Source: Octopus bimaculoides
Lineage: Eukaryota
Assembly: GCF_001194135.2 (NCBI RefSeq)
Contig: NC_068990.1
Span: 53,063,545-53,127,544 of the forward strand
DNA: 64,000 nt
Direction of reading: 5' to 3'
Positions 1-61,200 of this stretch are shown piece by piece. The first letter of the stretch is position 1, and each line of letters opens with the position of its first letter. The translations under genes were made by a program, and so were the position numbers. The notes beneath the pieces were generated by a model. It made no database searches, had not been told where the DNA came from, and was given only the letters and a program-made list of their open reading frames with translations.

Positions 1-300
1 ATTGACATTACACATCCAACGGAGCATACTGGCTTCATTCCTTGCGAGCTTACGTATGTCCTCAGCAGTTACAGCCCATGTTTCACTGCCATGTAGCATG
101 GTTGTTCGTACGCATGCGTCATACAGTCTGCCTTTTACTCTGAGTGAGAGTCCCTTTGTCGCCAGCAGGGGTAAGAGCTCTCTAAACTTTGCCCAGGCTA
201 TTCTTATTCTAGCAGCTACACTTTCAGCGCACCCACCCCCACTACTAACTTGGTCGCCCAGATAGCGGAAGCTATCGACTACCTCTAGTTTTTCACCCTG
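1..300 (-). mobile_element. RTE-clade LINE fragment (region C-terminal to RT)
   Basis: Minus-strand translation gives RIRIAWAKFRELLPLLATKGLSLRVKGRLYDACVRTTMLHGSETWAVTAED..., typical RTE LINE sequence. The same family occurs at 59570-60100. Confidence 0.85.
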
Positions 301-664
301 GAATGAGATAGAAGTTGTTTCCATAGTTTAAATGTACAGAAAACAAAAGACTGAGACAAGCAAATGTTGTGAAAGATATTCAGTACTAATTTTGACTCTA
401 TGTAATGAAATATTTGGTTTGAAGAATTGAATATATTTTCTTTTGATTTCTTTGAAATTCAGTATATTGCAGTAAATTCTCTCTTGTGAATAGTCACTAA
501 CTAACCCCAATAGTCGACCAATATCTATCCATCCATTATGTATTAATTATCTGTTGTTAATGACTGTTTTTCATGGCCACACTTTTCCACTAATCTTACC
601 CTCCACTTATTATTTCTTTCTTACAACTCAACATTGGACTCCAATATTCCAGCGAGAAAATGGC

Positions 665-10473: not shown

Positions 10474-10573
10474 NNNNNNNNNNNNNNNNNNNNNNNNNNN
10501 NNNNNNNNNNNNNNNNNNNNNNNNNNNNNNNNNNNNNNNNNNNNNNNNNNNNNNNNNNNNNNNNNNNNNNNNN
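10474..10573. other. assembly gap (100 N)
   Basis: N run. Confidence 1.
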
Positions 10574-10870: not shown

Positions 10871-10939
10871 GTACTTATAATAATAATTATTATTGGTATT
10901 CCCAGAGAAATATAACAGTGATAACAATAATAGTAATAA

Positions 10940-11150
10940 TCATAGTTTCTAATTTAGGCACAAAGCTAGCAATTTTGAGGGGAGGGGATTAGTCAATACC
11001 ATTGACCCCAGTATTTAACTGGTTCTTTATTTTACTGACCTTCAGGGGATGAAAGGCAAAGTTAGCCCTGGTGGGATTTGAACTTGGAATATGAAGAGCT
11101 AGAAGAAATCCCACAAGGCATATTTATGTGAAGTTTTAATAACTCTATCA
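10940..11150 (-). mobile_element. SINE family A
   Basis: Reverse-complement family A body (gatgaaaggcaaagtt...atttgaac) flanked by (AAT)-like tracts. Confidence 0.7.
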
Positions 11151-14574: not shown

Positions 14575-14790
14575 TCAAGGTAGCAAACTGGTAGAATCAT
14601 CAGCACACTGGGCAAAATGCTTTGTGGCATTTTGTTCATCCTTACATTCTGAGTTCAAATTCTACTGAGGTCCACTTTGCCTTTCATCCTCTTAGGATAG
14701 ATAAAACAAGTACCAGTCAAACACTAGGGTTGATGTAACTGACTAGCTTCTCCCTCCAGATTTCAGGCCTTGTGCCTATAATAGAAAGTC
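14575..14790 (+). mobile_element. SINE family A
   Basis: ggtagcaaactggtagaatc...ttctgagttcaaattc...actttgcctttcatcc...ggccttgtgcc. Confidence 0.8.
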
Positions 14791-15446: not shown

Positions 15447-15660
15447 GTGTTGAGCTGGTAGACTTGTCAGCATGTCAAGCAAAATGCTCTGTTGTATTTT
15501 GTTTGCCTTTATGTTCAGGGTTTAAATTTTGCTGAGGTCCACTTTGTCATTCATTCTTTTGGGGTCAATAAAATAAGTTCCAGTTGGGCACTGGAGTTGA
15601 TGTCATTGACTTGTTCCCTCTCCATAAAATTGCTGACCTTCTGCCCAAATTTGAAACTAT
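15447..15660 (+). mobile_element. SINE family A flanked by (ATT)n
   Basis: Family A body between (TTA)n tracts. Confidence 0.8.
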
Positions 15661-15669
15661 TATTATTAT

Positions 15670-16860
15670 TATTTTCCAGCAGTTTTAGTTTTATTATGTG
15701 CTTTCACTGCACTGACACATGTAGCTCTGTGTTTCTTAGGTACGTGCTGGGGTTTGTTTTAGTGTTGTTATTTCTACCGTATTGAAAGTGTTTTATGTAG
15801 GATGTGTACAGTGCCCCTAGCAGTGCTATTTTCTGTATGTTATATATATTCATAAGTCTTGATGTTTTGGTTATGTATTTGTCTGTATATTTTTAACCAC
15901 ACCTAGTTGCGCCTATTATTGTAGGGATTATTTCTGTCTTCAGACTCCACATTGAGTTTATCTCTACTTCCAGATCTTTGTCTTTCAAGAGTTTTTCCGT
16001 TTCTTTTAGAGATACATTGTCATCTGTTGGGGACTGCTGTGTCAATGAGAAGGCATTGCTTTTCTTGGTAGTCTCTGACAACAATATCTGTCCTATTAGC
16101 CTTGATCACTCTGTGTGTGCTGGCATATCCCAGAGTATGGTTGCTTTGTAATTTCCTGAGGCCTTTTTTGAGCTATGCTTGCACCATTTTTTCTTGTCAT
16201 TCCATAGTGCTGACACAGCTTTGTCATGCCTGTGGCTGTATTTCTTCTTGATCAGGACTGGACAACCAGAAACAGTATGATTTATTGTTTTTTCCCCATC
16301 ACTGCTTTTTCTACAGTTATTGTATTTTTTTTTCATTATATATTTTTGGTGGTTTCTGGCGGGGTGGCTTTGATCATGTGTTGCTATTAAAATTTCTTTC
16401 CTGTTTAATTTATCCTAGGATTTACCATGTAAGGGCTTTTCTTGCAATTGTTTTATCATGATATTTTGTAGTTCCAGTTTTAGCTTTGATTTTAGTTGCT
16501 TTATAGCTTTTGATGTTTCTCCTTTTTCTTCATATTTGTAGGTATTATGAACTTTCCCTTTTATTTTTTGACTTCCTTGAAGGCAGAAAACAGTTTTCTT
16601 GTTTTGCTCATGCTTTGTGGTTATTTGTATCAGCTTTCCTTGGTTCTGAGTTAGATATTTCTGTAGTCCTATGGTGGATATTCTATAATAGTTTTCTAGC
16701 TGTATAAGGCCTTCATTACCTTTAATTTGTTGTTTATATAACCTTTCTGTGTTATATTTTGGGTGGTGTATTGTAAATTCTGTCATTGTTTTTCTTGTTT
16801 TCCAGGCTAGTTTGGTTAGTTCACTTAACATCCAGTTAAGAATATTGTAACTGTAACTTA
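15670..16860 (-). mobile_element. R4/Dong-like LINE 3' portion (REL endonuclease), degenerate
   Basis: HHPKYNTERLY..GLIQLE, KTINHTVSGCPVL (CCHC region), ATILWD and MWSLKTEIIPTIIGA motifs; 3' end abuts (AAT)n on its own strand. Confidence 0.85.
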
Positions 16861-17160
16861 TACCTGGGTCAACTAGTGTATCTTATTTCTCACATTCAGA
16901 TCTGTATTATTTTAAGTATCATTCTAATTTGTCAATTTTTTTCTATATTCATTTCTCACTTTTGTGTGTTGCACTGTATTTATTTCATCAATTATTATTA
17001 TTGTACAACAGATTAAACTATTAAAAAAAAAAAAGAATTCCTAACAGCAGGTTACAACAAGTAACCTTAGATGCCAAGAACCTTTGACAATGTTGCACTT
17101 AACTAGGTTTATGCCTATTTCCTCTATCCATCAGTTTACATCTTAAGGCATATTTCCTAA

Positions 17161-19194: not shown

Positions 19195-22000
19195 TACTTT
19201 TTATCTACATGTTTCTTACAATCACTAGCTGAGACACACCCAGCATCCTAGGGTGAGTGAAGGATAAGAGATGTTGCAGAATTACTGAAAGCTTGGGGAG
19301 AGGAAATGTCAGGGGCAGTAGCAAAATATCTTCATGTAATACAACATAGACATTTAAATTGATAGGGTTTTTCTAAGGATCGGGCAGTACTTGTCAGCAC
19401 AATCTTTTGGATTTCTCTGAGACATGGTTCTCCTGGGACATTATCTAGATGTTTCTGACATCTATTTCTTATCATACCTAGAGTACCCTCAATAACAGGA
19501 ACAATTCTTGCTTTAAGATGCCACATATTTTGTATTTCAATTTCCAGGTCCTTATGTTTATTTAATTTAATCCTTTACGGATATATTTTTATCAGCAGGA
19601 CCACTTACATCTATTAGTCTACGAGTATATTCTTCCATATCTTTAATGACCATGTCTGGTCGATTAGCCTGGATCGTTCTATTGGTGTTGACTGGAAAAT
19701 CCCAGAGGATAATGACATTTTTACCTTCAACAACTGTTTCAGGATAATGTTCATACCAGTAAGCAGAAGTGCTGATTTTGTAGTGTTTATGTATTTTCCA
19801 GTGTAAATACTGCCCTAACCTATTGTAGCAGCTTTTGTATTCATTTGGTGTCAGCACAGGACATCCTTAGACGAGATGATCTATTGTTTCATCAAATGTA
19901 TCACAGAATCTGTATTTAGGGTCAGAACTGTTTTGAAGAATGTTAGCCTGGTAGTTTTTGGTAAGCAAGCTTTGTCTTGTGCAGCTAATATGAAACCTTC
20001 AGTCTCTACTTTCAGACCTGAGTTTCTCAGCTACTGATTGGTTGTTGCTTGGTCTACATGAGCATTTTGACTTTGAAGTATATACTGTCCATGCAGAGGT
20101 TTCTGGCACCATCACTCCTCAATTTGTTTCTGCCTATTCTTCTTTGAAGTCTGTTTGATCTGTTTTCCTTTTTTTGTGGCAGTGGTTTCGGGTTCTTCAT
20201 CTAATTCAGTGTTAATGCTGAGTTCTCTTGTGAATTTGCAAGCTTTCTTGGCAGTAGAATGTGTTTTGTTGCTGCTTTCATGTTTGCACACAAGCTGCAG
20301 CATCCAGTCCTCTGTACTAGATAGGTACTTGTTCATTGCTATTGTGGAGGACTTACAGCACAGTTCTACCTGCATCATCCCTCTTCTCCCATTACTTCTA
20401 GGTAGGTACAAATGATGAATGTCTGATTTTAGGTGGTACATATTCTTAGATGTTAGAAGTTTTCTCGTCTTTCTATCCAGGTGTTGGAGCTCTGTAAGAT
20501 TCTAGTTAATGATGTTAAAACTGTGTTAGACTACTGGAAGTGCTAGGGTGTTAATGGCTTTGATGCAATTTTTGGAGTTGAGTTCAATTTTTAGTATGAG
20601 TCTTACTCTCCTGTAATACTCCTTTCTTAGTTTGTATATTGTATACCATATCCTTTGTTTATCCCTAGATATTTATAGCTTTCTTGTGGGTCAAGTTCCT
20701 TGGTGGTAGTGTCAGTATCTAATTTAATGGAAGTTGTTTGCTTGAGTTTGCCTCTTACAAAAGTTGCTTTAGCACACTTATCAAGGCCAAGCTTCATCCC
20801 AATGCCATTGCTGAACTCTTTGACATTTGTTAACAGCCCTACTAGCTCTTCGTCATTTTTAGCAAATAGCTTCAGATCATCTGTATAAAGCAGATGGTTT
20901 ACTATAATATTATACACTTTGAACCCATACCGGATGTTACTCAGTTGGTTTGAGAGTGGAATCAATGCCATGCAAAAGAGTAATGGGGAGAGGGAGCCAC
21001 CTTGAAAGATGCCTTGTTTGATGTTGATGTTGTTAGATTGGCTTATCCCATTACTATGGTGTAGAAAGAAACATGTATTCCACTTGGCCATGCTACCTTG
21101 TAAGAATCTGGAGATGACAGGAGAGGTCTTACATATCTCAAGGGCCTTGAGTAGCGAATTATGTGGGACACTATCAAATGCTTTCCTATCGTCTATCCAT
21201 GCCATACTCCGGTTCTACTTTTTGCTCTGGCAATTCTCTACAATCATTTTATTTATGAGTAACTGATCTTTCCATCCATAAGAATTCCTTTTACAAACAC
21301 GTTATTGGTCAGTAGTTCTTTGGATTTTTCGTGTCTTCAGTTTTTGGTAGAAGGTATGTTGTTCCTTTGGTCAGCCAGCTCTAGGTTCTGGATGGCATCA
21401 GTTAGAGATGCAGCAAAATGTTGGTGTACTTCTGTCAAACAATTCAGCCAGACGTTAGGGATCTGGTCCAGTCCTGAGGTTTTCCATTTGGGAGACTTTC
21501 TAAAAACACATCTTAGCTCTTCTATTCCTATTGCCTCCCATTTCTGCTTTTCAACTTCATCCAGTCTCACTTTCTCACATTCTATCAAGTGAGCTTCAGC
21601 ATTATATTCTTTTTTGTTGCTCCATATCTTCTTCCAGAACTCTTCCATTTCCTCAGTCTTGGGTGGCTCCTTTACTTCTATCTCGCTTTTGCCAATTTCC
21701 TTATAAAGTTTTTTTGCATCTATCTTTACCTTGTTTTGTCAATAAAATTTGATTCTTTTGTCATACCCACTGAGCTGTTGGGCTTTCAGTTGTATTCATT
21801 GTTTTACTATTTCCTTGGTTGCAGGGAGGTTTATAAAATCTTTGATTTTATATTTTTGCTTAATTTTTCTGGCTCGTTTCATCTTAATATTTACTCCTCT
21901 AGCAAGTTCATCAAGAACTGATACATCTGTCCACAGACATTTGATCTCTTTTTGTATTGCTGCTTTCTACTTAGGAGGTCTATTGACATGATTGGTCCTT
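19195..22000 (-). mobile_element. R4/Dong-like non-LTR retrotransposon, 5'-truncated, degenerate (RT + CCHC + REL)
   Basis: WIDDRKAFDSVPH, QGIFQGGSLSPLLFC, NHLLYTDDLKLFAK, YKYLG, HLKSDIHHLYLPRSNGRRG, ANRPDMVIKD..LIDVSGPADKNI and MWHLKARIVPVIEGTLG; ends at (TAA)n (19155-19190). Confidence 0.93.
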
Positions 22001-22029
22001 TTCTGTGTCGTCCTGGGGACTGCACCTTG

Positions 22030-23280
22030 CCTTTTTTATCGATAGATTATTTCACACTTCTTGAGTCTGAATTTCCATTCTAATATCAGCACTAAAACAG
22101 TGGACCATGTTCATCAAGAAACTCACTTGTGTCTTATCCTTGCCATACATTTTCAGATTATCCATACAGAGGAGGTGATTGATTGTATGGGATTTTTTTT
22201 TTTTAGCTGATATTCCCAGGTTCATTTTCCTAAGTACCAAGGCCAGAGGATGATGCAGAGAAAAAAAAAAGCAATGGAGATAAGCTATCACCTTGGAAAA
22301 TTCCTCTTATGATGCCCAGGGTGCCCAGGCTTTTTCCATAGGATGTCAGTTCAGTTTTCTACGTCACCATACTTCTCTTCAGAAAACATGTTACATTCCT
22401 TGCAATTCCAAATAGATCTAAGCACTTGATAAACCATGAATGTGGAATCATATCATAAGCTTTTGACAGCCAATCCAGGCCATTCCCAATTTCTTCATGT
22501 ACAATCTTGCATTACCATTTTGTCTATCAATAATTGATCTTTGGTACCTCTGCATCTCCTACAGCTTGTTTGTTCTATTGGTAACAAATCGTTCTCATCA
22601 AGAAATTTGTATAATTCTGCAATTCCTCCTGACAGTGATTTCCACATTAATGAGAAGCAAAAAATTGGCTTGTAATTGTCAGCAGCATTTCCTTTTGATG
22701 CATCCTTCAGACACAACACTGTTTGTCCTTTTGTCAACCAGCCCTGAATTTCTTCTCCATCAATCAATGCATTATATTGCTCTGCTATCAATTTACGGCA
22801 TCTACTGAACTTTTTTTTAATCCAAAATCCCTGTACACCATCAGGTCCTGCTACTTTCCAGTTGCTTGTCTTTTTACTCATATTTCTGATACTGTCTTCT
22901 GTGAAGTGGATAACCTTTTGCTGGGGATAAGAAGTTGTTTGCTTCAGGCTGCAGTGCAATTCAGCTGCAGTATTATGTTGTTCTTGCTTTCTCCATATCT
23001 GTTGACTTTCGTCATCACTAGAAACTAATCTTTCATGTTCTTTATCATCATTAGTCTCTTGATAAAATTTTTTTTGGTTGGTTCTAAACAATTTGTTTTG
23101 CTGGTATTGCTTAATCCATTGTTCAAACCTAGTTAGCTTTGCTTTTTTGGCAAGTATGCACTGCTTCAATTCTTTGATTACAACAGTCAAACCTTTTGTA
23201 TCTATCTACATCATGCTTCTTCCTCATTTTTTTTCAAATTTGTGATTATTCTTCAATACTCCATTTCTTTTCCTGACAAG
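22030..23280 (-). mobile_element. second R4/Dong-like family, 5'-half fragment (pre-RT to RT)
   Basis: NWKVAGPDGVQGFWIKK, ADNYKPI, RGTKDQLLIDK, GIFQGDSLSP and INHLLCMDNLKMYGKD; ends abruptly against the 19195-22000 element. Confidence 0.85.
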
Positions 23281-23414: not shown

Positions 23415-23824
23415 GGCAGTGAGCTGGCAGAATCATTAGCACACTGGGTGAAATGCTTAGCAGTATTTCGTCTGTCTTTACGTTCTGAGTTCAAATTCTG
23501 TCACGGTCAACTTTGCCTTTCATCCTTTCGGGTTAATAAATTAAGCCCCAGTGAATCACTGGGTTTGATATAATTGACTAGTCCCCTCCCCACAAATTTC
23601 AGATCTTGTGCCTTTAGTAGAGAGGACAGTTGTTATTATTATTATTATTATTTGACAAGCTGGCAGAATCATTAGCATACCGGGCAAGATGCTTAGAGAT
23701 ATTTTGTCCGTCTTCACCTTTTGAATTTAAATTCTGTCAAGGTCGACTTTGCTTTTGGGGTTGAGCACAGGGGTCAATGTAATCAACTTACACCCTTCCT
23801 CCAAGTTGCTGGCCTTGTGCTAAA

Positions 23825-23890
<66 letters not shown>

Positions 23891-26279: not shown

Positions 26280-26872
26280 TGTGCTGGAGTTAGTTGATAA
26301 AATCAACTATTCACCTACCTTGCAAATGTATGGCTTTGTGCCAACATTAGAAAGGATTATTACTATTATTATTATTATTATTATTATTCAGGTGGCAAAC
26401 TGGCAGAATTGTTAGCATGCTGGGCAAACTGCTTAGTGGCATTTTGTCCGTCTTTACATTCTGAGTTCAAATTCCGCTAAGGTCATCTTTGCCTTTCATC
26501 CTTTTGAGGTCGATAAAATAAGTACCATGTGAACACTGGGGTTGATGTAATTGATTCATTCCCTCCCACCAAATTGTTGCCCTTGTGGCAAAATCTGAAA
26601 CCATTATCATTATCATCATCATCATCATCATCATTATTATTATTATTATTATTATTGTTGTTGTTATTAAAGCCATAGGCATTAGCATGCTGGGAAAAAT
26701 GCTTAGTGGTATTTTGTCCATCATTACATTCTGAGTTCAAATTCTGCCAAGGTCCACTTTGCCTTTCATCCTGTTGGGGGTTGATAAATTAAATACCAGT
26801 GAAACACTGGGGTTGATGTATTCAACTATCTCCTTCCTCCAAATTTTAGGTCTTGTACCTTTAGTGGAAAAA

Positions 26873-26970
<98 letters not shown>

Positions 26971-28180
26971 CATTATTGTTATTGTTATTGTGGTAAGCTA
27001 GTAGAATTGTTAGTGCATCAGGCAAGATACTTAGCAGCCCTTCTTCCAGCTCATTACATTCTGAGTTCAAATTCCACCCAGGTTGACTTTGCCTTTCATT
27101 CTTTTGGGGTTGATAAAATAAAGTACTAGTCAGCAACTGAGGTTGATGCAATCGATTTGCCCATCACCCTCCAAACTGTGTGCCTTGTACTAAATTGAGA
27201 TAATAATAATCCTTTCTACTGAAGGCACAAAGCCTGAAATTTGTGGAGAAATGACCAGTTGATTAGATCGAACCTAATGCGTAACTGGTATTTAATTTAT
27301 TGACCATGAAAGGGAAAGTTGACTTTGGTGGAATTTAAACTTAAAAAATAAGGATGGATGAAATGCTGCTAAGCATTTTGCCTGGTGTACTAATGATTCC
27401 ACCAGCTCACCACCTACTACTGCTGCTGCTGCTGCTGCTGCTACTACTACTACTAATAATAATAATGATGATCATTGTTATTTATTATTATTATTGGTAG
27501 GTGGTGAACTGGTAAAATTATTAGCATGCTTAGTGGTATTTTGTCTGTTCTTACATTCTGATTTTGAATGCTGCTGAGTTTGTCTTTGTCTTTCATCCAT
27601 TTAGGGTTGATAAAATAGGTACCTATCAAGCACTAAGGTCAATGTAATTGACTTACCCCTCCCTGAAATTACTGGCTATGTGCCTATAATACAAAGGATT
27701 ATTATTACTGTTGGTAGAATTGTTAGAACATCACAAAAATGCTTTGCCATATTTGTTCTGACTCTTTACATTCTGAGTTTAAATTCTGCCCATATCAACT
27801 TTACTTTTCATCCTTCCAGACTTGGGGAAATGACGTACTAGTCAAGTACTAAGGTTGACAGTATTAAATTGTCCCTCCCCTCAAAATTGCTAGACTTGTA
27901 CCTAAATTAGCAACCATTGTCATTGTCATTATTTAGAGCAGTGGATTAACAAAATCATTAGGACATCAACCAAAATGTGTTTCAGCATTTATTCTGGCTC
28001 ATTATATTCTAAGTTAAAATCCCATTAATGTCAACAACTTTGCCTTTTACTCTTCTGTCAGGAGGGTGGGGTGGAGGGGGGAATCAATAAAATAATATAC
28101 TAGTCAAGTATGAGAAGTAGTGTAATCAGTAGCCACCCTTTTCCAAAATTTTGGGCTTTGTGCCTATATGAGAAACAATT
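26280..28180 (+). mobile_element. pile-up of 7-8 family A SINEs (one inverted, ~27210-27415) interleaved with (ATT)n/(ATC)n microsatellites
   Basis: Repeated ~200-bp bodies with ttctgagttcaaatt and ctttgcctttcatcc. Confidence 0.88.
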
Positions 28181-28189
28181 ATTATTATT

Positions 28190-29700
28190 TTTGTTTATGC
28201 TTTTGCTCTGGTAGATGTTATACTGACACCATACCAAAAGAGCAAGCCATATCCAATAGCCAGAAGTCCTTTGGGTCATTCTTTCTCCTTTGACTTTCTA
28301 ACACCCTCCTTGGAATCCTTGCTGTTCATAACATGGCTGTTTTCTGCAACAGTCCTGTCTGGATGATAATTCCTAGCTTCTGAAGCCATGCATCAAACCT
28401 ATTACCATCTACTTTCAGTGTGCCAACCACAGTCGGTACCACTTCCAAGTGTCTGATTCTCCATAGTTTCCTTATTTCTCTCTTCACCTCCTGATATCTA
28501 TAAATTTTCTCACTTTCCTTCTCATATCTTGTGGTTGCACTGTGAAGCGATATTCATATTAATTGCTTCATTCTTTTTCTTTTCTACTACAACGTCATGT
28601 TTTGTAGCCACAATAAGAGGGTCACATTGGATGGTTATGTCCCACAAGATCTTATATTATTTGTTTTTAGTAACCCTTTCTAGTTGGTGCTCATACCATT
28701 TCTTACATCTGCTCATGTCATACTTATAACAGAGCTTCCAGTGAACCAATTTGTCAATGTTGTCTTTCTTTCTCTTGTAGTCTTTCTGTGCAAGCCTCTT
28801 ACATTCACTAATAATATGGTGTATTGTTTCACCTTTCTCACTGCACAACTTACTAAGTGAGAGAAGTCACTAACTTGTTAATATTGAACTTGATATAGTT
28901 TGTTCTCTGTGCCTGTGCTTGGACCATGAAAATAAGGGCTTTAGTTTGAACTTTTGAGTTGCTTTTCCTAGTCCAATCCCAGATCTTATCTTTGTCATCT
29001 GTTTCAGGCATTTCCTGCAAGAATTGACCATATATTTTTTTCTTTCCATCTATTGAAGATGCCATTCTGTCTGTCTTGTTGAAATTCCCCCTTTTCATTT
29101 GCTTCATCACTGCTTAGGACTTTTATATTTCTTACTTCTGCCATCAATCTCTCATTTGAATTCTTTACATACCATACCAGATTTTTTTCCTCAGATTTCA
29201 CACACATTTCACAGTTAATGAGACCTCTTCCACCTCTCTATTATGATAGATCTACATCACTGTCCACATCACTTTTGGGGTGTAGTGGCCCTCGTAGTAT
29301 TATCATTTTCCCGGTTTTTCTATCAAGTCCCTGAAGTTCATCACTTTTCCACACCAGCCCTACACTTTAGAGCTGCAATGGGTCATGTGTTGACGGCTCG
29401 TATCTTAGTTGGAAGTCACAGAGGTATCAGCAAATTTGCTGACATCTGTATGATTTGCAACTACTACATGGACATCTCAAAACCAAATAGACTCCCCTCC
29501 TTATAGTGTTTCATCTGTGTTTGGGAATCTGGATATTTTTGTATTTCAAATCTCATGTTTTCCCAACTGGATGTCCTCACTACTGTGAACTCTTGAAATT
29601 GATGTGAGAGTGATTCTCAGTTTGGTCAATTTGAACCAAATGCTGAGAGTAACTTTCATCACATCAATAATGTAGCAAAGTTTTGGGTTTCCATTTATGG
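28190..29700 (-). mobile_element. R4/Dong-like LINE 3' half, degenerate
   Basis: GPLHPKSDV, YGQFLQEMPET, EKGETIHHIISECKRLAQKDYKR and KKWYEHQ; 3' end abuts (ATT)n at ~28180. Confidence 0.85.
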
Positions 29701-32005: not shown

Positions 32006-32310
32006 NNNNNNNNNNNNNNNNNNNNNNNNNNNNNNNNNNNNNNNNNNNNNNNNNNNNNNNNNNNNNNNNNNNNNNNNNNNNNNNNNNNNNNNNNNNNNNN
32101 NNNNNNNNNNNNNNNNNNNNNNNNNNNNNNNNNNNNNNNNNNNNNNNNNNNNNNNNNNNNNNNNNNNNNNNNNNNNNNNNNNNNNNNNNNNNNNNNNNNN
32201 NNNNNNNNNNNNNNNNNNNNNNNNNNNNNNNNNNNNNNNNNNNNNNNNNNNNNNNNNNNNNNNNNNNNNNNNNNNNNNNNNNNNNNNNNNNNNNNNNNNN
32301 NNNNNNNNNN
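32006..32310. other. assembly gap (305 N)
   Basis: N run between (TG)n and (AT)n. Confidence 1.
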
Positions 32311-32677
32311 ATATATGCGCACACACACCTAGAGGAGACTTAGATGCAATGTGCAATGATGTATTTTTATAAGTTTATTTTCACTTCAATACATTTTCAT
32401 GTAACCAATATATTGCAGTATATCAGCCTAATTTTAAACACGTTAATGTTTTTAATTGATAACCTTCTTTGTTTCAATATTACTTTCTGCTACTTTCAAC
32501 TTTAAAATTTAAAATTTAAGGTTCAAATTCCTTCTTCTCTTCTGTTCACATTTTTTTTTTTTTTTACCTCCATATGTCTATCTTATTTTATGTACTGTCA
32601 CTCTTTTATTCATCCACTGTTTCTTTATTACATTGTTTCTATTTCTATAATTATTTCTTTGATCTCAAATGAATGAT

Positions 32678-32762
32678 TCTAATGTTTCCTTTCTCTTTTC
32701 AGGTAAGTTCATTTGGATATGCTTAACCCTTTATGTGATATTTACTGTAATAATCTGTAAGT
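32678..32762 (+). promoter_or_regulatory. candidate recursive splice site with 54-nt RS-exon
   Basis: TTCTAAT branch point, pyrimidine tract, CAG|GTAAGT at 32700-32708, ~180-nt AG-free zone upstream, second donor GTAAGT at 32757. Confidence 0.55.
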
Positions 32763-32999
32763 AAAATGGACTTTACCCCTCCTCCTTTGCTTGTTAAAGC
32801 AACATTTGTCCCTCCAATTTGTTGTCCAACGGACATGATAAAATGGAAAAGAAAATTCTTCACATACTTTATTAAGGTTTCTTTAATACCAGTTTGCATT
32901 TGTAAAATGTACAAGATCAGTGGATTACAGTATTGGACAATTGACTATTGCTTAATATTGAGCTCCTACTGGTGGAAAAAGCTTCATATTTAATGAAGA

Positions 33000-33660
33000 A
33001 ATTGTAGAATTTTTTTCTGTGGTTGTTAATGATACCTTGCATTGTATCTACTACTACTACTATTACATTCCTTAAGAGTCACTTTGATATTTCACTTCAA
33101 GTTGGTTACATCACTACTTTACACATATCGTTGACTATGTACAAGAGCAGTGATGTACAATATCATGTACTTTGTAAGTTTGCAGAGTTCTTTTTTAAGT
33201 TTATGACTTTCTTCTTCAGCTTTAGAATTACGAAGGGATCCTTCTAGAAATAGAAGTATTTAGCTCTTCATTCCCAACATTCTTGATAGTTCTTGTAATT
33301 CTTTGTAGTTTTTTTAGACTTTCGTAAAGATTCTCACTAAGGTACATAGATATCTTCCAGTTGGCAGATTTATTTTCTGTACATCTATGATAACAAGATC
33401 GGATATGTTAGCCACATCTACATATCTATAATAAAAATATCTGGTTTGTTAACAACATTATTTCTACATGTCCATGACGACAAGATTTGGCCTGTTAGCA
33501 ACCTTATCTCTTCATATCCATGACAACAAGATTGACCTATTTGCAGCCTTATTTCTACATATCTATAACATGATTGATCTATTCGCAACCTTATTTCTAA
33601 ATATCCATGACAGCAAAAAATGGCCTGTTAGCAACATTATTTCTCCTCTAAAAGATAAAA
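33000..33660 (-). mobile_element. decayed R4/Dong-like 3' end with tandemly amplified REL-motif segment
   Basis: Minus strand repeats VANRPNLVVMD/VANISDLVIID-type peptides, followed by ELSRMLGMKS resembling the REL C-terminus. Confidence 0.6.
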
Positions 33661-40939: not shown

Positions 40940-42086
40940 GCATAAATACTCACAAATACACATGGCCAGTCTTGCACAGCTTTCAACGTAAAATAAAGAT
41001 TTAGAAAGTGTTCTCAGTGCTTTTGCTGTTGTACTACTTTGGTTTAGTCAGTTTATAATCCAGTTACGATCTCCACATTAAACTGTTCTACTTGCTTCAC
41101 TCGTATCCTTTGGCAATGTATGAATGCCACAACCTCTGGTTTTTCTTCCTAAATAAATTATATCTGTTTTTATCTCTTATGCTGTGATGAGTCATATTAA
41201 TTTAACATTTCTAAATATTGTACATAGCTCATATTATATTTATACTACAGTCATATGTCAGTTATTCTGTATTCTACTCTTGCTACACTATGTTGCCCTC
41301 TACCCCTGCTACACTCTATTCATGTTGTTGTATACTGTACTTTATTTCTGCTATAATATACTGTACCCTACTCATGCTGTAAGTCTTTCTTGGAAGTTAA
41401 TGTTTTCCTTTTATTATTATATTTGTTGTAAATAAGGATTTTGGATTGTTGGGTGGTGTGTGACTGAACAATGATAGAACTGTAGAGAAACAATATGAAA
41501 TAGTATGAAAAATAATATGAACAACGATAGAATTATAGAGAAACAATATGAAATAATGTATGAAGTCAAGTGTATCTGTTTAGGTTGATGGAAAATGGTT
41601 TTGGAATTTGTAATTAATCTTGCAGTATTCTTGTTATTTTCTCTCCTTGAAGTTTTAGCTACTTCTTTTTTGTCAGTGATAAATTGATTGTCTCTCACTA
41701 TCCTCCTTCACTATCCTCCTTCACTTTTGTTTCATTTCTTTCTCTTCTTAATTCTTCAGGGCATATTTGTGTGTGTGTTGCAGTGAGTCTTTGTTATGTT
41801 ACCCTCAGCTAACACAATCTCTCTACTTCCCCTCCTTCCTTCTCACTCCTCTTACGTCACCCATCCACAATATATCGATGTTACATGTTTCCATTGTCTT
41901 AGAGAAAACAGCAAAAGAGGAGAGAGAGAGAGAGAGACTTATTTCAAGTATTTTTCTACTTTCAACAAGTTTTAAAATGTGATGTTTAGGATCATTACAA
42001 TGCTTAATAAGCACAGCAATTAGTTGTAGTAGTAATAATAGTAGCAGTATGCATTTTTATTATGAAATCAACAATTGTAATGGTCA

Positions 42087-42139
<53 letters not shown>

Positions 42140-42142
42140 CTC

Positions 42143-42235
<93 letters not shown>

Positions 42236-42240
42236 CTCTG

Positions 42241-42295
<55 letters not shown>

Positions 42296-43289
42296 CTATC
42301 TATCTCTTTCTCTCTCTCTCTCTCCTTTAGTAAACTAGAGATCAGTTCGGTATGGAAAGTAAATATTTCATTATTACATAAAACACAATATAATACTGAT
42401 ATTTATTTCAACCCCAGGTGAGAAGAATCGATCAACACTAGGGGAATTTCTATAATTTCTGCCAAGTCTGGGCCATTTGTCAAACACTAATAATAATGCT
42501 ACTTATACTACTATGTTACTATTAATACTTCTATATTATTACTACACACAGTAATAATAATGCTTCTAATATTACTATATTATTACTGGTACTGCTATAT
42601 TATTAGTACCCAAAGTAATAATGTTATTTCTATGGTTCTTGGTGGCTAGAATTAACTTTGAAATTCTTAAGAAGTTGTGGTATTTATATTTTTATTCTAA
42701 TGTGTAAAGTAAATGAAATAGATGTTCATGTCTGGATACTTACTAGGTCTTTACAAAAATATGGTCCTCATTAGATGACTGCTTACATATCTTGGACAGT
42801 GCTGCTGCTCTCTGTGCTGCCATGCATCCACACACCTTTTAGATAAAGGCCATCCAGTTGATTGCCAAAGATTCTCCAATAATCTAAATGACTATAGTTG
42901 ATATATTATTTTGGTTTATCTCTAGAGTTCTTCTGTTTCTACCAACACCTCTTCCATCTCCTCCAATAAAGCCCATTCAATGTACCAGTCTTTCTCCTTG
43001 CCTTGTTATCCTCACTTTGCCCTTATCTCCTCCTTCCTAAAACCTATACATTAAATAGTTTTCAATCATTCCTCCTGCCTGAAATTCCACTCTCTGGCTA
43101 CTGGCATCAAACTACAAAGCTTAACCTAAAGTTCATTCACATTGATCTCATCAACTAGAGAAAATCTTAAAAGTTCATCTGTACTCTTCTTCCCCCTTAT
43201 CCAGTAAAATTATAATTAAAACTTGCAAAAAAAAAAAAAAATTGTTGTGAATTTTGTTCAGTGAAAATCCTATCATTCTGTTATATAAG

Positions 43290-53760: not shown

Positions 53761-54033
53761 TTGTTACTTTCAGTTGATATATGACATCATTGTTTTCTTA
53801 TACATTTTTATTTTGTTTAGTTTTGTGTAGTTAATGGACTAAACCAATATATATTTCATTACTCTCTGTCTGCTGGAAACATAATAGGTACTGTTGACCA
53901 TAACAGGATTTGATCCCAAACATAAAATTACTTTCCTGTTTCTCTACTGTTTTAGTTGTTTATGGTTTCAGGAGAAGAGGGGTGACAGTGACTTTGAAGT
54001 TTTGGCTTCAGAGCCTTTGTCAGACTTTCTCTT

Positions 54034-54075
<42 letters not shown>

Positions 54076-54202
54076 CCCCGTTCTCTCTCTCTTTCGTTCT
54101 CTCTCTCTCCCCTGTTCTCTCTCTCTCTCTCCCCTGTTCTCTCTCTCTCTCTCCCCTGTTCTCTCTCTCTCTCTCCCCTGTTCTCTCTCTCTCTCTCCCC
54201 CC

Positions 54203-54236
<34 letters not shown>

Positions 54237-54253
54237 ATAACAAAAACCAGATT

Positions 54254-54710: not shown

Positions 54711-55145
54711 NNNNNNNNNNNNNNNNNNNNNNNNNNNNNNNNNNNNNNNNNNNNNNNNNNNNNNNNNNNNNNNNNNNNNNNNNNNNNNNNNNNNNNNNNN
54801 NNNNNNNNNNNNNNNNNNNNNNNNNNNNNNNNNNNNNNNNNNNNNNNNNNNNNNNNNNNNNNNNNNNNNNNNNNNNNNNNNNNNNNNNNNNNNNNNNNNN
54901 NNNNNNNNNNNNNNNNNNNNNNNNNNNNNNNNNNNNNNNNNNNNNNNNNNNNNNNNNNNNNNNNNNNNNNNNNNNNNNNNNNNNNNNNNNNNNNNNNNNN
55001 NNNNNNNNNNNNNNNNNNNNNNNNNNNNNNNNNNNNNNNNNNNNNNNNNNNNNNNNNNNNNNNNNNNNNNNNNNNNNNNNNNNNNNNNNNNNNNNNNNNN
55101 NNNNNNNNNNNNNNNNNNNNNNNNNNNNNNNNNNNNNNNNNNNNN
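54711..55145. other. assembly gap (435 N)
   Basis: N run. Confidence 1.
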
Positions 55146-56089: not shown

Positions 56090-57277
56090 TGCATGGCCTG
56101 TCTGATTTCCAATGAGTACAAATTGTTGGGGTGCAGATGGCTAGAGCTTCAGTCACTAAAACTTAGAGGGATTGCAGAATAGTGAAATGTATTGTCTAAA
56201 AGCCATTAAACTATGGCAGTAAAAGTGACTGCAGAGCTCAACCATCAACCTGCCAACCCAGTTTCAACCAAAACTCTTCATTGTGAGCTCCATAAAGCTG
56301 GATACTATGGGAGGGCTGTAATTGCTTAACCTCTCTTTTCCCCTTTCATCGTTGATGATCAGAGAAATATGATGTTTAGATTATCAGAACTGGTTAATGT
56401 CCTAATGAAAAAGTGTCATCTCTGATGAGTCATCATCCACTCTTTACTCCCATTTCAGAGTTTGTTTTGACACAACCCAAAGAGGCCTTCGATCCTGATT
56501 GTTTGGCGCCTATCATGAAGCATGAATGTGGCTCTATGGGGATTTGGGTCACCATCATGGAGTTCTTTTAATCCCTTTACTTGTTTTACATGGCAAAGGT
56601 AATGTCATGGATTATCTGAGTACTTTGGCTGATTATGTACTTCCTGAGGTACAAAAAATTGTTCCCAGATGGTGATGAAATTTTCCAGGATGATAATCTA
56701 CTGATTCACAAGGCTTATGTTATTCAAAATTGTTAAGAAGAAAACAAAAGTGAAGTAAACCATCTTGATTAGTCACCTTCAATCACTGGATTTTGATGTA
56801 ATTTTTTCTACTCTAGGCACAAGGCCTGAAATTTTAGGGGTGGGGCCTAGTCAATTGCATTGACCCTAGCTTTTGACTAGTCCTTATTTTATTGACCATG
56901 AACAGATAAAAGACTAAGTTGACCTCAGAAGAATTCAAATTCAGAATGTAAAGCTGGAAGAAATGTGGCTAAGCATTTTATCCAGCATCCTAATGATTCT
57001 GCTAGTTTGCTGCCTTAAGGGACTCAATACAGTGAAACAATTGTGGTACATTTTGGAGTAACAAGTAAGGAGCTCCTTCACTCTGCCATTGTTGCCAAAA
57101 GAATTAAAGCGACATTTACTTGAAGAAGGGTTCAGAATTCCCCTAACAGCTGTTTGGAACCTGTACAAGTCAATTCCTTGCTGTATTAAAGCTGTGACTC
57201 ATGCCAAAGGTAGACCAATTCTGTATTCAATAATAACACTTTCATTTAACAGTGTGTTTCCATTATATTGTCCAACT

Positions 57278-57979: not shown

Positions 57980-58915
57980 GACACATCTGCACCATCGGAT
58001 GCTCCTGAACCAGTTGTTGAGTGTCCCTTTGGAAATATGCTGTGCATGAGAGGACCCGGCAAACCAAGTGAGACCAAAATCCAAGGCCTCTGCCATGGAT
58101 GTAGCCAGCCCACTTATGTGTACCATTACTTCTGCTTGCGAAGACCTGTTGAGGTAAGTGAAATCGAAATCAAAATCGAACTAAATTCGACGACTGGCCC
58201 CCATGCCAACGTCTCCTTCATTAGACACTAAACTCGGCTTGCAAAGACCTGTTGGGGCAAGCGAAAGCGAAATCATGATGGCACCTGTACCAGTGGAGTG
58301 CTAAGAGCACCGTTCGAGCGTGATCGTTACCAGCGTCTCCTTCCTGGCATGTGAAAAGTCGATCGAGCGAGATCGTTGCCAGTGCTGCTGGACTGTGCAG
58401 GTGGCACGTAAAATACACCATTTTGAGTGTGGCCGTTGCCANNNNNNNNNNNNNNNNNNNNNNNNNNNNNNNNNNNNNNNNNNNNNNNNNNNNNNNNNNN
58501 NNNNNNNNNNNNNNNNNNNNNNNNNNNNNNNNNNNNNNNNNNNNNNNNNNNNNNNNNNNNNNNNNNNNNNNNNNNNNNNNNNNNNNNNNNNNNNNNNNNN
58601 NNNNNNNNNNNNNNNNNNNNNNNNNNNNNNNNNNNNNNNNNNNNNNNNNNNNNNNNNNNNNNNNNNNNNNNNNNNNNNNNNNNNNNNNNNNNNNNNNNNN
58701 NNNNNNNNNNNNNNNNNNNNNNNNNNNNNNNNNNNNNNNNNNNNNNNNNNNNNNNNNNNNNNNNNNNNNNNNNNNNNNNNNNNNNNNNNNNNNNNNNNNN
58801 NNNNNNNNNNNNNNNNNNNNNNNNNNNNNNNNNNNNNNNNNNNNNNNNNNNNNNNNNNNNNNNNNNNNNNNNNNNNNNNNNNNNNNNNNNNNGCTTTTAC
58901 GTGCCACCAGCACAG
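57980..58915. mobile_element. RTE 3'-UTR-type repeat region spanning a gap
   Basis: gaagacctgttgagg, gtggcacgtaaaa units as in 60330-61035. Confidence 0.65.
58442..58892. other. assembly gap (451 N)
   Basis: N run. Confidence 1.
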
Positions 58916-59169: not shown

Positions 59170-59565
59170 TATATATATATATATATGCTTACAAACACAT
59201 TCCCAACTTATAAGTCACTTCAAAAAGTGCTCGATTCAATAACACCGTTTACAAACTCTATGCTTGGAATGAGCAATTTTAAATACTTTTGGAACTTTCA
59301 CACAAGGTACAGGTATCTTATATGTATACCATTCTGCCTAAATTTTGGAACTGCAGATACAATATCCCTGCATATCTCACGTCTGTTTTCATTACTCCAT
59401 GTCGCTCTCTATTTCACATCTTATCTAGAGTAACTATTACTTAACCATTTCCTCACATCGTCTCCGATGTAGGGATATATAAAATATCCCGGAAACAGCT
59501 GTAAGACCTTCTCTTTATAAATGTTCTGAAATCTTTCACAGCCTTGGATTTTTATCTCATTAGTT
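59170..59565 (+). mobile_element. Penelope-like 3' end / pseudo-LTR
   Basis: Contains a hammerhead-shaped motif typical of PLE termini; no intact ORF. Confidence 0.5.
59460..59507 (+). ncRNA. variant/degenerate minimal hammerhead
   Basis: GTCT-CCGATGT-A-GGGATAT(ATAAA)ATATCCC-G-GAAA-CAGCTG-TA-AGAC: stems I and II, palindromic ACAGCTGT stem III and GUA triplet; the core deviates at U4 and A9. Confidence 0.55.
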
Positions 59566-59569
59566 TTTG

Positions 59570-61200
59570 TGTGTGGCAGATGCACAGGGGTAGTAAACAC
59601 TGAAGATGAACAGAAAACAGATTCCCTCTCATGCCAGGGAGTAAAACTAGAAGTAGTTAATAGCTTCTACTACCTAGGCGACGAAGTCTTTAGTGGGGGT
59701 TGTTTCTCTGAGAGTGTAGAGGCTAGAATAAGAATAGCCTGGGCAAAGTTCAGGGTGCTCTTACCTCTGCTGGCAACTAAGGGCCTCTTGCTCAGGATGA
59801 AATGTAGGCTGTATGATTCTTGTGCAGAAACTGCCATGCTACACGGCAGTGAAACATGGGCCATGACTGTTGAGGACATGCGTAGGCTTGAAAGAAATGA
59901 AGCAAGTATGATCCGCCGGATGTGTAATGTCAGTGTGCATGCATGACAGAGTGTAATTGCCCTGAGAGAAAAGTTGGACATAAGAAGCATCAAATATGGT
60001 ATGCAAGAGAGATGACTGCGCTGCTATGGTCATGTGTTATGCATGGATGAGGACAGCTGTGTGAGGAAGTGCCAGTCCCTAACTGTGGAAGGAACCCAGG
60101 AAGAGATGGTGAAGTATGACCTTCGAACATTCGGCTTCACAGAGGCAATGACAGGAGACAGAGACCTTTGGAGATATACTGTGAGAAGACCCAGCAATTA
60201 AAATGCAATCGCAGCCATGGCCGATGCCAGTGTTGCATATCCGGCCCATTTAAGAGTACCCTTGATGTGTTGGGTGATATGATATGCTTGAGAAGACCTG
60301 TTAAGTCAAGTAAAACCCAAATTGGAGCTGTGGCCAGTGTCCCCTGACTGGCTCCCATTCTGGTGGCACGTAAAATGCATCATCTGAATGTAATCAATGC
60401 CAGTGTTCCCTGACTGGCTCCTGTGTCGGTGGCACATAAAAAACACCGTCCAAATGTAGTCAATGCCAGGTCTGCCTGACTGGCATCCGTGCCAGCAGCA
60501 CGTAAAAAACACACCTGAACTTAGCCAATGCTAGTACCCCCTGACTGGCTTCCGTGCCGGTGGCATGTAAAAGTCACTTTCCAAACATGATCAATGCCAG
60601 GATCTACTGACTGGCCCAGTGCCGGTGGCACGTAAAAAGCAACATCCGGACATCACCAATATCATTCCTCCCTGACTGGCCCCCATGCCGGTGGCACGTG
60701 AAAAGCCGTAGCGAAATGTGATCGATGCTAGTCTCGCTTGACTGGCATCCGTGCCAGCAGCACGTAAAAAACACCACCTGAACTTAGCCAATGCTAGTAC
60801 CCCCTGACTGGCTTCCGTGCCGGTGGCATGTAAAAGTCACTTTCCAAACGTGATCAATGCCAGGATCTACTGACTGGCCCAGTGCCGGTAGCACATAAAA
60901 AGCACCATCCGAACATCACCAATATCATTCCTCTCTGACTGGCTCCCATGCCGGTGGCACGTGAAAAGCCGTAGCGAAATGTGATCGATGCCAGTCTCGC
61001 TTGACTGGCTCCTGTGCCAGTAGTACGTAAAAAGCACCCACTACACTCTTGGAGAGGTTGGAATTAGGAAGGGCATCCAGCTGTAGAAACATTGCAAGAT
61101 CAGATTGGAGCCTGGTGCATCTGCTAGCTCTCCAGACCTCAGTCAAACTGTCCAACCCGTGCCAGCATGGAAAACGGACATTAAACAATGATGATGATAT
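59570..61200 (+). mobile_element. RTE-clade LINE 3' portion with repeat-array 3' region and (GAT)n tail
   Basis: ORF 59569-59946 (EVVNSFYYLGD..ARIRIAWAKFRVLLPLL..MLHGSETWAM..MIRRMCNV), then the 65-66 bp array and the gaagggcatccagctgtagaaa...gatgatgat end. Confidence 0.9.
60335..61035 (+). repeat. 11-unit 65-66 bp tandem array with 4-unit higher-order duplication
   Basis: TGACTGG at 60345, 60411, 60477, 60542, 60608, 60673, 60739, 60805, 60871, 60936 and 61002; units 3-6 match units 7-10. Confidence 0.92.

Follow-up and report, generated by a model that had tools for sequence, protein, structure and literature searches.

A 64-kb stretch of octopus DNA (the whole stretch that was analyzed, hereafter the window) carries on its plus strand a tandem splice acceptor and donor, CAG|GTAAGT, with its junction at position 32703, and this core motif exceeds chance and is statistically notable. 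We tentatively read the element, with a confidence somewhat short of even, as a candidate Drosophila-type intronic ratchet point accompanied by a cryptic, normally excluded RS-exon of 54 nt. Recursive splicing is the best available, albeit unproven, interpretation of the constellation of motifs found there. Chance is its main rival, itself less than probable and by no means remote, while a transmembrane (membrane-anchor) reading of the 54-nt segment is not supported and is unlikely beside either a recursive site or chance.

Anatomy of the candidate site and the proposed splicing route

The candidate site lies at positions 32520 to 32762 of the window and consists of the following features, given with the assembly gap that precedes them.

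32006..32310, unstranded: assembly gap of 305 N, flanked by a (GT)n microsatellite, ~390 nt upstream of the site, restricting how far upstream it can be read
32521..32700, plus strand: AG-free pyrimidine-rich tract, ~182 nt (T 55%, C 20%, A 19%, G 7%)
32679..32683, plus strand: candidate branch site CTAAT, with A 32682 lying 21 nt before the junction
32685..32699, plus strand: polypyrimidine tract, 15 pyrimidines with no break, T at -4 to -7
32700..32702, plus strand: CAG, candidate acceptor (3' splice site), the first AG past the branch site
32703..32708, plus strand: GTAAGT, candidate ratchet-point 5' splice site, a candidate donor that would be remade once an upstream exon joins at 32703
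32703..32756, plus strand: putative cryptic RS-exon, 54 nt (T 44%, G+C 28%)
32757..32762, plus strand: second GTAAGT, candidate RS-exon donor, exon side TCT, with a weaker full 9-nt score (rank 324 of 4085)

Consecutive AGs of the plus strand stand at 32519-20 and 32701-2, with 180 AG-free nt between them that include a T15 run (32551-32565), and the upstream one, at 32519, is preceded by A/T-rich rather than pyrimidine-rich sequence. The heptamer TTCTAAT occupies 32677-32683, and its core, CTAAT, is the sole CTRAY in the last 100 nt before the junction. All three reading frames are closed near the 3' end of the AG-free tract, so that no long coding exon ends there; a short ORF starting at ATG 32669 crosses the junction. 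The elements on which the first-pass annotation had built its proposal of a textbook recursive splice site, namely, the 180-nt AG-free run, TTCTAAT, the pyrimidine tract, CAG|GTAAGT, and a second GTAAGT 54 nt further on, were all found at the positions given above, and the AG-free tract that it had pointed out elsewhere in the window is likewise present (1099-1234). Translation bore out its description of the 54-nt segment as well, in that frames 1 and 2 contain stops while frame 3 is open and reads KFIWICLTLYVIFTVII.

These observations comprise a tandem acceptor|donor, a pyrimidine tract with TT at -5/-6, and an RS-exon of ~50 nt with a donor of its own, i.e., the features by which ratchet points are recognized at the sequence level, together with a CTAAT whose A lies at -21 and which matches a branch site in sequence. 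The likeness to recursive (ratchet) sites that had been claimed for this element is accurate, as all sequence-level hallmarks of the Drosophila sites are present and are rare under a null of local composition. The two donors have identical intronic halves (GTAAGT); the exon side of the RS-exon donor is poor (TCT), and that of the ratchet donor would be set by the upstream exon.

We infer transcription of the plus strand, a location within a long intron, use of the site by the spliceosome, and exclusion of the 54 nt, and on these premises the following route may be proposed. The plus strand would be transcribed as part of a long intron, in which A 32682 as the branch point, the 15 pyrimidines that follow, and the CAG at 32700-02 would act as an acceptor, the recognition of which could be aided by exon definition across the 54-nt cryptic RS-exon up to the donor at 32757. 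Ligation of the upstream exon to 32703 would then recreate a strong donor (exon|GUAAGU), which would be expected to outcompete the downstream TCT|GUAAGU donor, and a second step would remove the 54 nt along with the remainder of the intron, leaving an mRNA without a trace of the event.

Rarity of the motif and rival explanations

Within the window, AGGTAAGT has two plus-strand occurrences and a single minus-strand one, and GTAAGT occurs 12 and 17 times, respectively; the second plus-strand AGGTAAGT, at 58152, has no pyrimidine tract. Splice sites were scored with a crude, generic metazoan position weight matrix that was not trained on octopus sequences, by which the donor at 32703 ranks 2nd among 4085 plus-strand GTs and the acceptor at 32700-02 ranks 4th among 3418 plus-strand AGs. 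The combined score of 18.3 is the best of the 409 AG|GT junctions on both strands, with the runner-up at 12.5 (a gap of ~6 bits), and, among the top-scoring junctions listed, solely the one at 32703 combines a match to the branch site with a GTRAGT further downstream. An apparent periodicity of ~12 to 14 kb among near-consensus AG|GT sites (6744, 20400, 32701, 46355, and 58152) was also considered and discarded, since it vanishes when all comparably scored sites are included.

Of 600 resampled windows, each keeping the local composition per 200 nt, one contained a junction of equal strength, corresponding to 0.0017 per 64-kb window on both strands (~0.2%). At looser thresholds there were 0.018 junctions per resampled window, and none of the 600 windows yielded one with the downstream donor too. 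An analytic estimate agrees with the resampling, with ~5 strong acceptors multiplied by a GTAAGT frequency of 2.3e-4 giving ~1e-3. Moreover, among 7665 AG sites, CTRAY at -45 to -12 was found in 9.9%, GTRAGT at +25 to +150 in 5.3%, and both in 0.39%, so that under this null, and with independence assumed, the full constellation is expected at ~1e-5 per window, or about once or less per few-Gb genome. These values are to be read with the caveat that the features were picked post hoc and that a Markov null built block by block may underestimate the frequency of such motifs in real T-rich or repeat DNA.

Not every feature of the site adds to this rarity. The length of the AG-free run is explained by the 7% G content of the tract, in which ~2.4 AGs are expected and the probability of none is ~0.09, and nine plus-strand AG-free gaps of 150 nt or more occur in the window. 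One or more open frames per 54 nt are expected 67 to 73% of the time, and the mean Kyte-Doolittle hydropathy of the frame 3 peptide (2.3, which places it in the highest 2.8% of the open 17-codon windows of this T-rich strand) is only mildly unusual and is largely explained by T-rich codons (44% T). The AG-free length, the open frame, and the hydropathy thus provide no independent support for the site. The longest AG-free stretches of the window are (CT)n-type microsatellites on the plus strand (42046-42329 and 54022-54249), the former of which generates a spurious high-scoring acceptor at 42329 and a pseudo-exon at 42331-42417, illustrating that simple repeats can mimic pyrimidine tracts.

The strongest competitor of the recursive-splicing interpretation, which we regard as possible at appreciably less than an even chance, is that a T-rich, G-poor tract, in DNA that is intergenic or not the sense strand, runs by coincidence into CAG and GTAAGT and is never used by the spliceosome. 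The recurrence of T-rich AG-free tracts in the window speaks for such a coincidence, as does the outcome of the searches at and around the site, which brought up neither a gene or exon nor a match to an RNA family or a protein. Extrapolation from 0.0017 per 64 kb would give tens of equally strong core junctions in a few-Gb genome, and a look-elsewhere effect has to be allowed for, given that the first-pass annotation was screening for anything striking. However, the core is expected only ~0.002 times per window, its combination with a second donor did not recur upon resampling, and the value for the core plus both auxiliary features remains far below that of the core even at a tenfold post hoc penalty; the junction is an outlier by ~6 bits in its own window, it carries TT at -5/-6, and its candidate branch site stands at the ideal distance of 21 nt. 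Where the balance falls hinges on the abundance of fly-type ratchet points in octopus: hundreds of them would clearly favor a true site, and with only a handful, as for the fully suppressed mammalian ones, chance and truth become comparable.

CAG|GTAAGT is the perfect U1-complementary donor consensus, and the junction might on that account belong to an ordinary, unannotated exon (UTR or long noncoding RNA), either as the start of an expressed 54-nt cassette exon or as the donor of a short noncoding exon. Mammals have hundreds of expressed exons with a donor-like start, 54 is a multiple of three, one frame of the segment is open, and the ORF from ATG 32669 runs across the junction. Nevertheless, we consider an ordinary exon or donor unlikely, in view of the intron-like composition of both the 54-nt segment and the tract upstream of it, the closure of all upstream frames near the junction, the lack of a good upstream acceptor (the AG at 32519 follows an A/T-rich stretch), and the absence of the peptide from the protein collection searched; a coincidental GTAAGT start would itself be a ~2e-4 event. 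Very unlikely, in our estimation, is a by-product of a decayed retroposon, in which T15 (32551-65) would be the antisense poly(A) of a minus-strand element and the motif a feature of its family. The T15 run lies ~140 nt upstream of the motif, a minus-strand AATAAA is found ~40 nt before the corresponding A15, and the window is dense in retroelements. In contrast, positions 32311 to 33400 have no second copy in the window, where the local SINE has 12, and neither a target-site duplication, a terminal structure, nor a tRNA or Rfam match was detected for them.

The first-pass annotation had further suggested that the 54 nt could encode a membrane-anchor exon, and this part of its proposal fared poorly. 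As an optional 18-codon exon furnishing a host protein with a membrane anchor, the segment could draw on its open frame, its hydropathy, a length divisible by three, and the precedent of the 51-nt Ubx microexons mI and mII, which are expressed RS microexons. The composition of the segment is intron-like (T 44%, G+C 28%), however, its open frame is at chance level, and the hydrophobic residues stem from the T content, so that the coding character expected of an expressed RS microexon or membrane-anchor exon was not found. A search of 5.8 billion proteins, including O. bimaculoides UniRef entries, with a 450-amino-acid pseudo-protein made of all ORFs around the site, the RS-exon peptide among them, returned no homologue at an E value of ≤10, with a sensitivity that is borderline for the 17 residues of the peptide. 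In addition, 17 residues are short for a membrane span, the frame is compatible solely with a phase 1 intron, and cryptic RS-exons are typically noncoding and excluded. A membrane anchor is accordingly the least probable of the explanations weighed here, and only marginally more credible, and still highly improbable, would be a regulated recursive microexon like Ubx mI and mII whose hydrophobic insert of 17 to 18 residues switches the host protein between a soluble and a membrane-tethered state.

Host gene, strand, and repeats in the window

The window has a G+C content of ~35% and consists mostly of repeats, among them many microsatellites. The 64 kb yielded neither a gene nor an exon on the plus strand, and a screen of ORFs by amino acid composition revealed no convincing host exon within ~30 kb on either side of the site, the ORFs being those of transposons and microsatellites only; this absence fits a very long intron and intergenic DNA equally. 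Ten ORFs of the window had no exact match in a collection of 15 billion proteins, whole-window scans yielded neither Rfam families nor tRNAs, and a 26-mer spanning the junction had no match in a scan of metagenome DNA. Likewise, self-BLAST and repeat searches of the 1.1 kb surrounding the site detected no second copy in the window, no transposon termini, and no target-site duplication. One apparent host gene, P0122 (an O. bimaculoides UniRef entry annotated as a "myosin motor domain-containing protein"), was rejected, as it shares just a transposon-derived piece with the window; that piece makes up residues 101 to 199 of P0122, and the gene model resembles a myosin-III-like/transposon chimera.

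A T excess is typical of the sense strand in invertebrate introns. On the plus strand of the window, T exceeds A in 53 of the 63 1-kb bins (mean skew, +0.10), with a G/C skew of zero, an indirect hint that the plus strand may be transcribed as the sense strand of a U-rich intron; the skew is partly fed by antisense LINE copies. The counts of AATAAA (59 on the plus strand versus 108 on the minus strand) were dismissed as strand evidence, because T/A composition predicts a ratio of ~2.2 and the signal adds nothing beyond the skew.

Among the transposable elements of the window, a long, frameshifted LINE with an RVT_1 domain lies on the minus strand (19335-23205), with 3' fragments of the same family at 15896-16882 and 28279-29366, also on the minus strand. 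The best database relatives of its broken ORFs are just 40 to 50% identical, and none of them is encoded by the window. A second LINE family is represented at 1-327 (minus strand) and 59530-60200 (plus strand), its transposon fragments showing 87 to 92% protein identity to Octopus bimaculoides UniRef entries, P0122 among them, which supports the octopus-like, cephalopod origin that the first-pass annotation had assumed. Mos1/mariner fragments and PIF1/Helitron pieces are present as well. A SINE-like unit of ~200 to 270 bp with an (ATT/ATC)n tail occurs in 10 plus-strand and 2 minus-strand copies, located at the following positions.

683-746, 14602-14742, 15479-15669, 23436-23884, 26412-26939, 27051-27188, and 27527-27815, plus strand: SINE-like copies
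10934-11097 and 56851-56993, minus strand: SINE-like copies

Several of these copies stand head to tail at 26.4 to 27.8 kb, and their orientation bias may partly reflect local duplication. Tandem repeats include a G+C-richer array at 60333-61038 whose periods of 66, 131, and 263 bp are nested within one another (91% matches for 263 bp), related sequence to which occurs at ~57.95 to 58.4 kb and contains the AGGTAAGT at 58152, and a 46-bp repeat at 33447-33644 (4.4 copies, 76% matches), ~700 nt downstream of the candidate site. The assembly has four gaps in the window (10474-10573, 32006-32310, 54711-55145, and 58442-58892), with microsatellites bordering the one that starts at 32006.

Comparison with known recursive splicing

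In the literature searched, recursive splicing is described in flies, mouse, and human, with candidates in lungfish. It is not described there in any mollusc, and no paper joins it in its text with octopus or cephalopods, the one co-occurrence of "cephalopod" being in a reference list. If confirmed, the element would be the first recursive splice site described in a mollusc, in a lineage whose genome is large and rich in repeats and whose neuronal genes are long, and, alongside its fly and vertebrate counterparts, it would allow exon-definition-based recursive splicing to be argued as ancestral to bilaterians and open a motif-first route to further cephalopod sites. It would nonetheless be a new taxonomic instance of a known mechanism that is already well understood, of moderate interest if true, and a single motif-only candidate changes little by itself.

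In vertebrates (Sibley 2015; Blazquez 2018), definition of the RS-exon through its acceptor and a downstream donor comes first, and its inclusion would usually be deleterious or make it a poison exon; the octopus segment has stops in two of its three frames. The hosts of the vertebrate sites are introns of tens to hundreds of kilobases in neuronal genes, and many of the sites correspond to annotated, expressed exons under repression by the exon junction complex. Compared with the Ubx mI and mII microexons, the octopus segment shares a size of ~50 nt, a start with a donor sequence, and a length divisible by three, whereas mI and mII are coding, conserved, and found in mRNA isoforms, and the octopus 54 nt are intron-like and lack a protein match. 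A further comparison is with the exonization of Alu-type antisense retroposons and other pseudoexons, where an antisense poly(A) tail (T15 at the octopus locus) and the T-rich sequence of the element can pass for a pyrimidine tract and acceptor with donors close by, but the octopus locus is single copy within the 64-kb window.

The closest counterparts are the ratchet points of Drosophila (Hatton 1998; Burnette 2005; Duff 2015; Joseph 2018, 2021; Pai 2018). Joseph et al. describe a ratchet point as a tandem acceptor|donor in front of a cryptic RS-exon of ~50 nt with its own donor, more than 500 of which are known in flies, while in mammals nine fully suppressed ones have been noted definitively. 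Of the fly ratchet points, 196 of 197 have TT at -5/-6, and they reside in introns of 11 to 133 kb, with a conservation that clearly exceeds that of other AG|GT sequences. The octopus site belongs to a different phylum (an octopus-like mollusc) and is a candidate recognized by its sequence motif; the ratchet donor is usually stronger than the RS-exon donor, and between the two octopus donors any such difference would come solely from the exon-side bases. It has in common with the Drosophila sites the same (Y)n-CAG|GTAAGT, TT at -5/-6 within a prominent pyrimidine tract, a candidate branch site of the CTAAT type ~20 nt upstream, and a short putative cryptic exon, noncoding in appearance and equipped with its own donor, that measures 54 nt here and ~50 nt in flies.
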